A DNA stretch of 27,951 nucleotides from Macrostomum lignano (Eukaryota), in NCBI GenBank assembly GCA_002269645.1, contig NIVC01005044.1, forward strand, positions 1-27,951. Direction: 5' to 3'. A program made the position numbers and the translations under genes. Positions 12,182 to 23,323 of the stretch are shown one piece after another. The notes beneath the pieces are model-generated. The model had not been told where the DNA came from, made no database searches, and saw only the letters and a program-made list of their open reading frames with translations. Position 1 is the stretch's first letter. The number at the start of each line of letters is the position of its first letter.

Positions 12182-13880
12182 ATGGAAACGCAGGACTCGA
12201 CGGCGAGGGCGGCTGATTTGCCACGGCAGGTGCAGCTGCGGCCCGGCAGGCCGGCGGAGGATGCGGAGTTTGTGGCGCTGTGCGTTCGCGACTTGGCGGT
12301 CAGCCACGAGGGCATGCTGCCGTTCTGCCACATGGGCGCCAGCGACCACTTTCGGGTGCTGCAGTCCGGCCTGGCCCGTCTTCTGGTGGCCGAGGCAGCC
12401 GGACGGCCGGCCGGATTCGCGCTGTACACCCGGTGCCACCTGGACAGGCAGCCTAGGCCAGGACTCTACCTGCAGGCTGTGTACGTGTGCGAGGACTACC
12501 GGGGCTGAAGGTGAGAGCGATCAGTGAGGCTGTTATGATGTGCTTAACTAGCTACTTGTAGTAATAAGAGGCACACTTCTAGTAGTAGTAGTACTACTAA
12601 TACTAATACTACTACTACTACTACTACTGCTACTACTACTGCTACTACAACTACTACTACTAATACTACTACTACTTGCAGGTAGGCAAGTCTCTACTCG
12701 TGGCTCTGGCTCGCCAGGCCTTGGCAACCGGCTGCGACCACATCAAGCTGATTGTGCACACAGATAACGAGGCTCTGTCCTGGTACCAGCGCATTGGCTT
12801 CCAGGTGCTCACAGAGACCGAGGGGGTCGCCTTTTTTGAGATGAATGACGTGGACTTTGTTGCTGGCCTGGTGGCCGCAGCCGAGCAGCCGCTGCCAGAC
12901 GGAGCCAGCCTGCGCCTGCGGCCCTGCGACGGCGCCGACGGTAGGCGATTCGAACTTCGGACTTCCGGCTGCGACTGTCGCCTGTTTGGCGCCTCCGAGC
13001 TCAGCTACTGCATGTGGGAGGGGGAGGCGGTGCAGGTGAGAGCTCAGCTACTGCATGTGGAGGGGAGGCGGTGCAGGTGAGAGCTCAGCTACTGCATGTG
13101 AGAGGGAGAGGCGGTGCAGGTGAGAGCTCAGCTACTGCATGTGGGAGGGGGAGGCGGTGCAGGTGAGAGCTCAGCTACTGCATGTGGGAGGGGGAGGCGG
13201 TGCAGGTGAGAGCTCAGCTACTGCATGTGGGAGGGGGAGGCGGTGCAGGTGAGAGCTCAGCTACTGCATGTGAGAGGGAGAGGCGGTGCAGGTGAGAGCT
13301 CAGCTACTGCATGTGGGAGGGGGAGGCGGTGCAGGTGAGAGCTCAGCTACTGCATGTGGGAGGGGGAGGCGGTGCAGGTGAGAGCTCAGCTACTGCATGT
13401 GGGAGGGGGAGGCGGTGCAGGTGAGAGCTCAGCTACTGCATGTGGGAGGGAGAGGCGGTGCAGGTGAGTGCTCATAGGAGGCTTGAGCACAGGAGATGCA
13501 GAAACCCGTCAGCTTCCACTGCCAACCCCCAGATCGACTTGTCGGCCGAGAGGCCGGTCTGCGCTGCCGCATCGGAGTGCGGCGCCGTCAGCTCCGCCTC
13601 GCTGAAGTGCCTGATGGGCCGCCTGCTGCAGCTGGCCGCTGCCGACAAGCCCACCCTACCGTCGCCGCATATCGTGTGGGTTGACACCGTCGCCAACCGA
13701 CCGACTTCCGGCGGACTCGATGACCTGCTGATGCGCGCCGGCTTCGAGAACAACACGGCCAATGAAGGCTGGCTGATCTGCCTGCTGGCCGGCCGGCCGC
13801 TGCACCTGCTGGCCAACAGGCCGCTGAACTGCCGCCTGCACCCGGAGCTGGCCGGCTGCCCGGATTCACTGTCTGACTGA
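12182..13880 (+). CDS. Tandem-GNAT gene 1 (SSAT/SAT2-like domain + degenerate GNAT domain); join(12182..12510,12682..13035,13533..13880), about 343 aa if a 1-nt deletion near 12501-12505 is repaired; otherwise a pseudogene
   Basis: VQLRPG, LLVAE..GRPAGFALY, GLYLQAVYVCEDYRG, VGKSLL, HIKLIVHTDN...WYQRIGFQVLTETEGVAFF match the SSAT-family pattern (SAT2 LTEAEGWHFF). Donors at 12511 and 13036; acceptors end at 12681 and 13532. Exon 1 is 329 nt with in-frame TGA at 12506-12508. Confidence 0.78.
12580..12676. repeat. (TAG)4 followed by inverted (CTA)n microsatellite in gene 1 intron 1
   Basis: Read directly. Confidence 0.9.
12997..13467. repeat. 43-bp minisatellite (GAGCTCAGCTACTGCATGTGGGAGGGGGAGGCGGTGCAGGTGA)x11 made of the last 13 codons of gene 1 exon 2 plus its splice donor
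   Basis: Units start at 12997, 13040 (41 bp), 13081, 13124, 13167, 13210, 13253, 13296, 13339, 13382, 13425. Confidence 0.97.
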
Positions 13881-13886
13881 GAGAGA

Positions 13887-14298
13887 TGTGAGAGTCCTGA
13901 TCCCCACTGTGAGAGGCCTGATCCCCACTGTGAAAGTCCTGATCCCCACTGTGAGAGTCCTGATCCCCACTGTGAGAGTTCTGATCCCCACTGTGAGAGT
14001 CCTGATCCCCAATGTGAGAGTCTTGATCCCCACTGTGAGAGTCCTGATCCCCACTGTGAGAGTCCTGATCCCCACTGTGAGAGTCCTGATCCCCACTGTG
14101 AGAGTCCTGATCCCCACTTTGAGAGTCCTGATCCCCAATGTGAGAGTCCTGATCCCCACTATGAGAGTCCTGATCCCCATTGTGAGAATCCTGATCCCCA
14201 CTGTGAGAGTCCTGATCCCCACTTTGAGAGTCCTGATCCCCATTGTGAGAGTCCTGATCCCCAATGTGAGAGTCCTGATCCCCACTGTGAGAGTCCTG
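13887..14298. repeat. 21-bp minisatellite (TGTGAGAGTCCTGATCCCCAC)n, about 19-20 copies, directly after the gene 1 stop
   Basis: Read directly; source of the HSGDQDS/VLIPTVR ORFs. Confidence 0.97.
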
Positions 14299-20686: not shown

Positions 20687-20962
20687 TAGTAGTAGTAGTA
20701 GTAGTAGTAGTAGTAGTAGTAGTAGTAGTAGTAGTAGTAGTAGTAGTAGTAGTAGTAGTAGTAGTAGTAGTAGTAGTAGTAGTAGTAGTAGTAGTAGTAG
20801 TAGTAGTAGTAGTAGTAGTAGTAGTAGTAGTAGTAGTAGTAGTAGTAGTAGTAGTAGTAGTAGTAGTAGTAGTAGTAGTAGTAGTTAGTATAGTAGTAGT
20901 ATATTATAGTAGTAGTTAGTATAGCAGTAGTATATTATAGTAGTAGTTAGTATAGTAGTAGT
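20687..20962. repeat. (TAG)n microsatellite: pure run 20687-20885 (about 66 units) plus degenerate tail
   Basis: Read directly; source of the poly-Ser ORF. Confidence 0.98.
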
Positions 20963-21017
20963 CAGCAGCAGCCATATATTTCACCGCCACCCCGAATTCA
21001 TGCAGCTGCCAGCAGCC

Positions 21018-23323
21018 ATGAAGCCCGAATCCTCCACCGCCACCGTGGTGATCCGCTACGGCACGCCGGATGACATGTACCAGGTGACCTGCCACGAGAA
21101 GGAGCTGGCCAAGTGTCACGAAAACATGCTGCAGTACTGCAGGCTGGGCAGCGAGGCGCACCGCCAGATGCTCATGGACGGCCTGTTCAGGATTATGGTT
21201 GCCGAGGCCGAGGGCCGCGTCATCGGATACCTGCTGTACACCCCCTCCTACCTGCTGCGGCACGCTGAGCCGGGCTTCTACGTGCAGAGCTTGTACGTTG
21301 AGCCGCTGTACCGCAGGCACCAGGTGAGGCGTCCCTCTGTGTGATTGCACTGTGAATGCACTGTGAATGCACTGTGAATGCACTGTGAATGCACTGTGAT
21401 TGCACTGTGAATGCACTGTGATTGCACTGTGAATGCACTGTGATTGCACTGTGAATGCACTGTGAATGCACTGTGAATGCACTGTGAATGCACTGTGAAT
21501 GCACTGTGAATGCACTGTGATTGCACTGTGAATGCACTGTGATTGCACTGTGAATGCACTGTGAATGCACTGTGAATGCACTGTGAATGCACTGTGATTG
21601 CACTGTGAATGCACTGTGATTGCACTGTGAATGCACTGTGATTGCACTGTGAATGCACTGTGATTGCACTGTGAATGCACTGTGATTGCACTGTGAATGC
21701 ACTGTGAATGCACTGTGATTGCACTGTGATTGCACTGTGAATGCACTGTGATTGCACTGTGATTGCACTGTGAATGCACTTCTATTTGGGGCTGTGGCAT
21801 AAATTCGCTGCGACTCCAGGCTATCCCACATTTTACTGTAAGAAACAGCATCTCATAATGCTCCACTGCACCCCATAATATCCCACTGCACCCCAGAATA
21901 CCCCACTGCACCCCATATTACCCCACTGCACCCCATAATACCCCACTGCACCCCAGAATACCCCACTGCACCCCATATTACCCCACTGCATCCCAAAATA
22001 CCCCACTGCATTCCATAATACCTTACTGCACCCCATAATACCCCACTGCACCCCATAATACCCCACTGCATCCCAAAATACCCCACTGCATTCCATAATA
22101 CCCCACTGCACCCCATAATACCCCACTGCATTCCATAATACCCCACTGCATTCCATAATACCCCACTGCACCCCATAATACCCCACTGCATTCCATAATA
22201 CCCCACTGCATCCCAAAATACCCCACTGCACCCCACGGTAGCACGGGGCATATTAAGAAGCCATAAATATCCCATACAACCAACCAGACCCGCACCGGCC
22301 CTCCCGCAGGTCGGCCAGTCGCTGCTGGCCACGCTGGGCCGCCTCGCCGCCTCCTCCGGCTTCGGCCACCTGAAGCTGTTGGTGCAGCACAGCAACGCGC
22401 CAGCCGTGAACTGCTACAGACGTCTGGGGTTCGATTTTCTAACCGAGACGGAGAACATCGGCTTCTTCGAGCTGTGGCCGCCGAAGTTTATCACTTCAAC
22501 TCTGCAGGCGGGTCGCCGGCCGCTGCCCGCCGGCCTCCACCTGGAGCTGCGGGACTGCGGCGGCCGGCTGTCGGGCAAGCTGGACACTGGGCGGCGGTTC
22601 GCCCTGACCTGCGCGGCCTGCGACTGCCGCCTGCAGGGCACCGTCGCTCTGACCTACTGTATGTGGGACGGCCCTGTGGCTCAGGTGAGATTTCTAGATT
22701 TCTGATTGGCTCACACCATCTACCCAGTCCAGCTCTGATTGGCTGGCACTATGTACCCAACTCAGCTCTGATTGGCTGGCTCTGTACCCAACTCAGCTCT
22801 GGTGGGCTGGCACTATGTACCCAGCTCAGCTCTGATTGGCTGGCACTATGTACACAGCTCAGCTCTGATTGGCTGGCACTATGTACCCAGCTCAGCTCTG
22901 ATTGGCTGGCACTATGTACCCAGCTCAGCTCTGATTGGCTGGCACTATGTACCCAGCTCAGCTCTGATTCGCACGCTTCCCTTAAACGCTTTCCAGGCCG
23001 ACTTGGAGGCGGTTCGGCCGAGCTGTCCGGCCCGCGGCTGCGCCCTGCTGAACGCGGCCAACCTCCGCCGGCTTTTCGGCCGGCTGCTGCTCACCTGCCT
23101 GCCTGTCCGGCCGGTCCGCCTGTGGCTGGAGGCCGGCCGCCGGGACTCCCGGCTGCGCCAGCTGCTCATCAAGATCGGGCTGGAGGACAGCACGGCCAGC
23201 GAGCTGTGGCACGTGTGCGACCTGTCCGGCCCCGGCCTGTCCGAGCTGGCCGGACGCAGCGTGGCCTGTCCGAGTGTTGGCCGACTGGCCATTGATGCAG
23301 GCGCCTTGACAGCGGAGCTTTGA
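21018..23323 (+). CDS. Tandem-GNAT gene 4 (SSAT-like + degenerate GNAT); join(21018..21323,22310..22684,22997..23323), 335 aa
   Basis: VVIRYGTPDD...ELA, IMVAEAEGRVIGYLLY, FYVQSLYVEPLYRRHQ|VGQSLL, NAPAVNCYRRLGF, YCMWDGPVAQ|ADLEAVRP. Donors CAG|GTGAGG at 21324 and CAG|GTGAGA at 22685; acceptors end at 22309 and 22996; all phase 0; intact frame. Confidence 0.9.
21340..21779. repeat. 11-bp minisatellite (CTGTGA[A/T]TGCA)n, about 40 copies, in gene 4 intron 1
   Basis: Read directly. Confidence 0.97.
21861..22234. repeat. 20-bp minisatellite (CCCCACTGCACCCCATAATA)n, about 19 copies, in gene 4 intron 1
   Basis: Read directly. Confidence 0.97.
22701..22969. repeat. 33-bp minisatellite (CTCAGCTCTGATTGGCTGGCACTATGTACCCAG)n, about 8 copies, in gene 4 intron 2
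   Basis: Read directly. Confidence 0.95.

Follow-up and report, generated by a model that had tools for sequence, protein, structure and literature searches.

A tandem cluster of four Macrostomum lignano genes encoding putative SSAT-like proteins with a second, degenerate GNAT-like domain

We analysed a stretch of 27,951 nucleotides of the Macrostomum lignano genome (contig NIVC01005044.1 of assembly GCA_002269645.1, positions 1 to 27,951 of the forward strand; hereafter the window), which contains four tandem paralogous genes, g1 to g4, between positions 12182 and 23323. We propose with moderate confidence that the products of these genes are single-chain SSAT-like GNAT proteins that carry a second, degenerate GNAT-like domain. 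This proposal is based on structure prediction with AlphaFold2 (AF2) followed by Foldseek, on profile and pairwise alignment statistics and on the purifying selection acting on both halves of the proteins. We further consider it rather probable that each paralogue encodes a live N-terminal half (N-half) of the SSAT branch together with a C-terminal half (C-half) that would be a diverged, SSAT-derived pseudo-GNAT, serving as the dimer partner within the same chain.

The exon models of g1 to g4 were rebuilt from the raw sequence. All four paralogues lie on the plus strand and every intron has GT-AG borders. These models bear out the initial annotation, made from the sequence alone, which had described four tandem genes with products of 330 to 343 amino acids (aa); the limits that it gave, 12182 (ATG of g1) and 23323 (stop codon of g4), are exact. 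The g2 gene (15848-16144 and 16448-17143, 330 aa) encodes strands beta1 to beta4 of the N-half in its first exon, which ends with the residues DYRRHR. The first part of its second exon (16448-16651) covers alpha3-beta5-alpha4-beta6 and the C-terminal helix of the N-half, including motif A (R-R-H-R-V-G) and Tyr135, and the second part (16652-17143) covers the C-half, from RRPLPAG to LAERQV at 17092; a variable tail then leads to the stop codon. The g3 gene (18909-19244 and 19345-20016, 335 aa) has a diverged N-terminal part of the N-half in exon 1, and the end of the N-half in exon 2, where the C-half begins at 19549. A single uninterrupted exon of g2, and likewise of g3, encodes the final third of the N-half together with the complete C-half, so that the two-domain fusion is not an artefact of annotation or of a mis-joined gene model. 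The g2 translation is 100% identical to the deposited 'hypothetical protein BOX15_Mlig012588g2' (P0001), and the products of g3 and g4 are identical or nearly so to the deposited M. lignano proteins P0002 and P0004.

The two halves of the encoded proteins

The N-half is clearly related to the SSAT/thialysine acetyltransferases. It matches the Pfam family PF00583 (Acetyltransf_1) over the gathering score, at 6.8e-12 and 1.3e-14, and a profile of the four N-halves found 56 GNAT matches among the PDB sequences at E <= 1e-3. The best of these is the thialysine acetyltransferase 12jc (1.8e-17), and its relative 2fe7 was also matched; the same profile reached about 4e-14 with plant NATA1/GNAT8 and about 5e-11 with human and mouse SAT1/SAT2. 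The Pseudomonas aeruginosa protein 2fe7 and the near-identical 12jc score 64 to 67 bits with the N-half, compared with about 45 bits for the animal SAT1/SAT2. Aligned with a SAT2/SAT1 profile, the N-half gave an hhalign probability of 98.7% over 148 columns, so that the motif-by-motif correspondence with SSATs claimed in the initial annotation is highly significant. Tyr135 (g2 numbering) corresponds to the general acid Tyr140 of human SSAT and is invariant in an alignment of 15 sequences; the Y140F change leaves SSAT with less than 5% of its activity (PMC4964394). The YxxD/S motif of beta4 and the alpha3 cofactor helix are also present. Judged by these features, the N-half is very probably a cofactor-binding GNAT.

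The relationship of the C-half is much more distant, and it was evaluated against shuffled controls. Alignment of the C-half profile with the SAT2/SAT1 profile by hhalign gave a score of 26.2 over 96 columns (P 0.002), with a null distribution from column shuffles of 12.4 +/- 2.3 and a maximum of 20.3; the observed score corresponds to z = 6.0 and was reached by 0 of 400 shuffles. With a generic GNAT profile the signal was lower (P 0.03; 5 of 300 column shuffles reached the score). The pairwise comparison between the g4 C-half and human SAT2, using a SAT2 sequence verified to be identical to PDB 2bei, gave z = 5.1-5.9 and 0 of 3000 shuffles at the observed level. The C-half therefore aligns weakly but significantly with SSAT residues 77 to 172, the E-G-W strand included. 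In this alignment YCMWDG corresponds to YSTWKG, ADL to LED, one helix to alpha3 and GLED...W..C..G....LA to GAQDL..EGW.F.F.GE...LA. The initial annotation had read the SSAT motifs in the same order and in degenerate form in the C-half, and its exact register was recovered in both alignments at a level above chance, although the signal is weak.

The residues found at the diagnostic positions differ between the halves. The C-half has PACAQRPC, PSCPARGC or PVCAAASEC at the position of the P-loop, which is therefore absent, and a Leu at the position of Tyr140; judged by these absent motifs, it would be inactive. The SSAT residue Glu92 aligns with an invariant Asp of the C-half (in A-D-L), and the SSAT strand motif Glu152-Gly153-Trp154 with an equally invariant (D/E)-x-W296. 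At the E-G-W position the N-half reads T-E-N-I-G-F-F, with no Trp. Seven Cys residues are invariant across the C-halves of paralogues that are about 40% identical (C182, C203, C205, C216, C234, C239 and C299 in g2), and these include a C-D-C motif and the Cys of Y-C-M-W.

Structure prediction pointed to the same fold. AF2 modelled the isolated C-half with a predicted local distance difference test score (pLDDT) of 67.9 and a predicted template-modelling score (pTM) of 0.66. The elements of this model follow the order b-b-b-b-a-b-a-b-b-a, which is the GNAT order (beta1-alpha1-alpha2-beta2-beta3-beta4-alpha3-beta5-alpha4-beta6-beta7) without alpha1 and alpha2. When the model was compared with the PDB by Foldseek, 49 of the 50 matches listed were GNAT folds, with probabilities of 0.94-1.0 and E from 5e-4, in agreement with the GNAT fold that the initial annotation had expected there.

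The comparison of the window with a second copy of the cluster, from contig NIVC01000731.1 (L002, used as the sister-contig reference), showed that, of the differences in 1,353 codons, 18 are synonymous and 3 nonsynonymous, which indicates that both halves are under constraint. The N-halves account for 9 synonymous and 0 nonsynonymous differences and the C-halves for 9 and 3; all three replacements are conservative (V>L twice and D>E). If about three quarters of the sites are assumed to be nonsynonymous, the binomial probability of finding no more than 3 nonsynonymous changes among the 12 in the C-halves is about 5e-4.

Proposed partnership of the halves and alternative explanations

Our preferred explanation is that each gene gives rise to a two-domain GNAT protein, probably cytosolic; no obvious signal peptide was found in the g1 to g4 proteins. 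The N-terminal domain, of about 165 aa, would belong to the SSAT/thialysine N-acetyltransferase branch and act as the acyl-CoA-binding and probably catalytic module, keeping the acetyl-CoA-binding core and the general-acid Tyr. The C-terminal domain, of about 150 aa, would be a strongly diverged GNAT-like fold derived from SSAT that has kept the (D/E)-x-W strand motif. Human and mouse SSAT dimerise through the exchange of strand beta7 (PMC4964394), and we infer that the C-half stands in for the second subunit of such a dimer, in the manner of the inactive domains of MshD and PamZ. In both of these proteins the inactive GNAT domain helps to form the substrate pocket, and the intramolecular interface of PamZ resembles that of GNAT homodimers (PMC4964394, PMC9054821). 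The C-half would thus buttress the N-half and help to shape a single acceptor-substrate site per chain. The first exons, which encode the acceptor-binding part, are diverged, and the cofactor-binding part is near-identical among paralogues, a pattern that would fit diversification of the substrate range.

Several observations weigh against this explanation. In the N-half, the general base Glu92 of human SSAT (in Y-L-E-D) is replaced by Gln in all four paralogues (Y-V/L-Q-S/A), so that catalysis is not assured; Glu92 is essential in SSAT, as the E92Q change in the mouse enzyme confirmed (PMC4964394). Motif A of the N-half is also non-canonical: it reads R-R-H-R/Q-V-G in g2 to g4 and R-G-L-K-V-G in g1, compared with the consensus Q/R-x-x-G-x-G/A, with the Arg and the last Gly kept and the first Gly changed to Arg, Gln or Lys. 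Atypical P-loops are known from active GNATs such as Hpa2 (PMC4964394). Because of these two changes the chemistry or substrate of the N-half may differ from those of SSAT, and SSAT should not be taken as a guide to its activity and substrate. The description 'active plus degenerate' in the initial annotation is reasonable for a C-half that has neither P-loop nor catalytic Tyr, and less secure for an N-half with Gln in place of Glu92. For the C-half, the isolated domains matched nothing in Pfam at E <= 1 and its hidden Markov model matched nothing among the PDB sequences at E <= 10, and the hhalign probability with the SAT2/SAT1 profile is just 14%. The AF2 model was built from a shallow alignment of three sequences, the other four models had pLDDT values of 37-52, and the TM-scores of the C-half model to GNATs are 0.34-0.48, that is, below 0.5. 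The full-length AF2 model, also from three sequences, was too poor for the domain packing to be read (pLDDT 52, pTM 0.41). Finally, the ratio of nonsynonymous to synonymous substitution rates (dN/dS) between paralogues is high (0.5-0.77): the N-half gives 0.5-0.7 and the C-half about 0.75.

The main competitor is a C-half that is GNAT-like without being the partner of a pseudo-dimer, and that would instead work as a module of its own with a regulatory or ligand-binding role, such as a sensor of CoA/acyl-CoA or of amines, comparable to the non-catalytic, GNAT-like C-terminal domain of M. tuberculosis ICL2; the N-halves could then still dimerise with each other. We regard this as possible but unlikely. 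Structures of the ICL2 C-terminal domain are among the best Foldseek matches of the C-half (highest TMq about 0.46), the seven invariant Cys may hint at a metal or redox site that has nothing to do with dimer mimicry, and the N-half has a C-terminal strand and helix of its own, so that it could pair with another N-half. However, the P-loop that binds the CoA pyrophosphate is missing from the C-half, and an intramolecular partner is more in keeping with the linker, which is short and Pro-rich, and with the SSAT-like strand motif still present at the C-terminal end. Furthermore, in the known tandem GNATs it is the dead domain that shapes the substrate site (PMC4964394, PMC9054821).

Several of the negative results above could also mean that the C-half is an unrelated orphan domain, either new or diverged past recognition, whose GNAT likeness would be an artefact of AF2 on a shallow alignment combined with chance motifs. 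Besides the missing Pfam and PDB sequence matches, the TM-scores below 0.5, the low hhalign probability and the fact that one in five AF2 models reached a pLDDT of 68, the C-half shows no likeness to its own N-half, and an exhaustive hmmsearch of its profile against 1.84 billion representative sequences retrieved just 5 proteins, all from M. lignano. Against this view, two independent lines of evidence agree on both fold and register, namely the Foldseek matches (49 of the 50 listed) of a model whose input alignment contained no GNAT, and the alignments (0 of 400 and 0 of 3000 shuffles), and we consider an orphan domain quite improbable.

The idea that the four genes are duplicates in decay or without function, in a genome that is rich in repeats and became polyploid recently, has in its favour the frameshift of g1 in this contig, the high dN/dS between paralogues and the minisatellites that invade introns, one of them made of exon sequence, but it is very improbable given that all other open reading frames (ORFs) are intact on at least two contigs, that synonymous changes predominate between the copies, with exons far more similar than flanks (99.1-100% compared with 87-98% identity), and that the g1 defect is a single homopolymer base, possibly an assembly error, in a gene with 0 nonsynonymous differences from its intact copy.

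Returning to the proposed intrachain partnership of a live and a dead domain, the origin of the two halves deserves comment. An origin of the protein by internal duplication is not claimed here: the N-halves and C-halves align with each other at an hhalign probability of 0.2% (14 columns), and Smith-Waterman comparison of a C-half with its own N-half gave z of about 0. The C-half is detectably similar only to SAT2/SAT1 profiles of the vertebrate type. Because the C-half resembles vertebrate SAT2 more than its own N-half, a gene-fusion origin can be considered, and the two halves may descend from different genes of the SSAT lineage. A bolder and rather doubtful extension is that the proteins are an asymmetric, 'frozen' heterodimer of SSAT, produced by the fusion of two different SSAT-lineage genes, in which the dead C-half would contribute its (D/E)-x-W strand and its invariant Asp and so complete the single site of an N-half that has neither Glu92 nor the Trp. 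This would be a catalytic complementation of a half-enzyme by a pseudo-enzyme, with the paralogues diversifying their acceptor specificity through exon 1.

Relation to known GNAT proteins and taxonomic range

The closest known family is that of SSAT and thialysine acetyltransferases (SAT1/SAT2, 12jc/2fe7 and NATA1), with which the N-half aligns end to end and shares the equivalent of Tyr140. The members of this family are single-domain proteins of about 160-200 aa, whereas the M. lignano proteins have two SSAT-like units per chain. They also differ from SSAT in the Gln at the Glu92 position and the R-x-x-(R/Q/K)-x-G form of motif A in the N-half, and in a C-half without alpha1-alpha2, P-loop or catalytic Tyr.

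In architecture, the proteins resemble the tandem GNATs MshD, PamZ, 3G3S, CBG (2wpx) and MAB_4324 (7q3a), which likewise combine two GNAT folds of low mutual identity in a chain of about 300-340 aa, one of them competent. The tandem structures 2wpx and 7q3a were matched by Foldseek over more than 320 columns of our full-length model, with a TM-score of 0.25 on this poor model. The novelty of the architecture was overstated in the initial annotation, given that single-chain tandem GNATs with one inactive domain and an interface resembling that of GNAT homodimers are well described (MshD, PamZ, 3G3S; PMC4964394, PMC9054821). These tandem GNATs are bacterial, and the dead domain of MshD and PamZ is N-terminal; in the animal M. 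lignano the dead domain would be C-terminal and truncated, and both halves are SSAT-like. Comparison of MshD, PamZ and CBG with both halves revealed no sequence similarity past the generic GNAT level, the halves being closest to SSAT-type proteins, and we treat the M. lignano fusion as having an origin independent of these proteins. A second comparison is with NMT, a monomeric enzyme of eukaryotes, including animals, with two GNAT folds and internal pseudo-two-fold symmetry, whose halves have very limited sequence identity and probably derive from a duplication (PMC4964394). NMT differs in being universal in eukaryotes, in its size of about 450 aa, in its use of myristoyl-CoA and in an active site built by both halves, and it is unrelated to SSAT. 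FemA/FemX also have two GNAT folds per chain (PMC4964394, PMC9054821).

Word-indexed searches for homologues, run with the complete protein and with a profile of the N-half, yielded two-domain relatives in M. lignano only, other Macrostomum species being perhaps absent from the databases. The remaining matches were single-domain GNATs of 147-201 aa with about 30% identity, mostly metagenome entries. The family itself, as the initial annotation had supposed, is undescribed: its database entries are named only 'hypothetical protein' or 'N-acetyltransferase domain-containing protein', and a literature search on the locus tags Mlig012588, Mlig017646 and Mlig013841 and on M. lignano acetyltransferases returned nothing relevant. 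If confirmed, the proteins would represent an animal case of a route followed several times in bacteria, in which an obligate GNAT homodimer becomes one chain that combines a live with a dead domain. The SSAT/thialysine-acetyltransferase family would be the starting point in this case, and the dead domain would be C-terminal and truncated. The proteins would then make it possible to see, in a natural case, what SSAT-type enzymes need of their partner subunit, and would exemplify a fast expansion, specific to one lineage, of amine-acetylating enzymes in a flatworm used as a model of regeneration. The interest is that of a modest curiosity for specialists in GNATs and polyamines, and no long-standing question is answered.

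Copies, exon structure and surroundings of the cluster

The four-gene cluster is also present on at least two other contigs, of 36,528 and 459,047 bp. The L002 copy is collinear with the window, and one difference lies in g1 (12182-12510, 12682-13035 and 13533-13880), whose first exon, encoding beta1 to beta4 of the N-terminal GNAT, has a frame-shifting deletion of 1 nucleotide (nt). In a run of G at about 12501-12504 the window has GGGG and L002 has GGGGG (TACCGGGGCTGAAG|GT compared with TACCGGGGGCTGAAG|GT), and the missing G shifts the frame to a TGA at 12506-12508, in this contig only. The frame is intact in L002 (YRGLK|VGKSLL), as it is in the deposited protein P0007. The g1 product has 343 aa once one G is restored; the initial annotation had overlooked the frameshift in this contig. 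Apart from the indel, g1 differs from its L002 counterpart by 3 synonymous and 0 nonsynonymous changes, and because only synonymous changes accompany the indel, an assembly error in the homopolymer appears no less likely than a real pseudogene. The reading of g1 as a pseudogene whose donor is TG was also considered and rejected: the exon ends in a canonical donor, AAG|GT at 12510|12511, and all that is missing is one G of the homopolymer.

The second exon of g1 encodes the N-half from alpha3 onwards and the beginning of the C-half (EQPLPDG, from 12883), and the third, 100% identical to L002, encodes the remaining C-half and the stop codon. The g4 gene (21000-21323, 22310-22684 and 22997-23323, 341 aa) has a first exon whose product is near-identical to the deposited P0004. 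Its second exon completes the N-half and encodes the C-half from 22514 as far as YCMWDGPVAQ. The third exon encodes the remaining C-half, the segment with the best alignment to human SAT2 (residues 74-170). A phase-0 intron directly after YCMW[DE]G..Q of the C-half is common to g1 (13035/13533) and g4 (22684/22997), and the corresponding sites of g2 (16800-16830) and g3 (19700-19730) are uninterrupted; judged from these gene models, the difference is an intron loss or gain inside a young paralogue family. A deposited protein of 740 aa (P0008) was examined as a possible read-through transcript of g2 to g4 and rejected, being a UniProt gene prediction with garbled, out-of-frame stretches and not evidence of a transcript.

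The divergence between paralogues is unevenly distributed along the genes. In exon 1 (beta1-beta4, the acceptor side) dS is 0.58-0.9 and dN 0.37-0.54, and the N-half from alpha3 to its C-terminal end is identical in g2 and g3 and nearly so in g4. The conserved C-halves of g2 and g3 in the window differ by a single synonymous change. The near-identity of the second exons of g2 and g3 spans 16442-17093 and 19341-19990, from 6 nt 5' of the acceptor to the ERQ|V codon; outside it the two genes have strongly diverged first exons (dS 0.58, dN 0.37) and wholly different C-terminal tails. Exon 2 of g3 is 99.2% identical to exon 2 of g2 in L002, and the cross-comparisons of the g2 and g3 second exons with L002 range from 99.2 to 99.5%. 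This pattern points to homogenisation of exon 2 by gene conversion or by a partial duplication limited to one exon.

Tandem repeats occupy about 10.1 of the 27.95 kb of the contig (about 36%). They form about 24 separate arrays, whose periods range from 3 to 43 bp. Almost all introns and spacers of the cluster have a distinct minisatellite of their own, and the copy number varies between the contig copies. The second intron of g1 is made up of a 43-bp minisatellite on the plus strand (12997-13474, 11.2 copies), whose unit consists of the last 27 nt of exon 2 and the 5' splice site. The array consequently offers about 11 potential donors, of which the first alone is in frame, since 43 is not a multiple of 3. 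In L002 this intron (2965-3357) is shorter by about 85 nt, a difference that would correspond to about two repeat units. Upstream of the cluster, on the plus strand, there is a gene with a RhoGAP domain (6406-7047 and 7094-8128; Pfam PF00620, 5e-18). The RhoGAP domain is followed by a long low-complexity ORF rich in Ala, Ser, Pro and Arg, and this order is kept on NIVC01000731.1.

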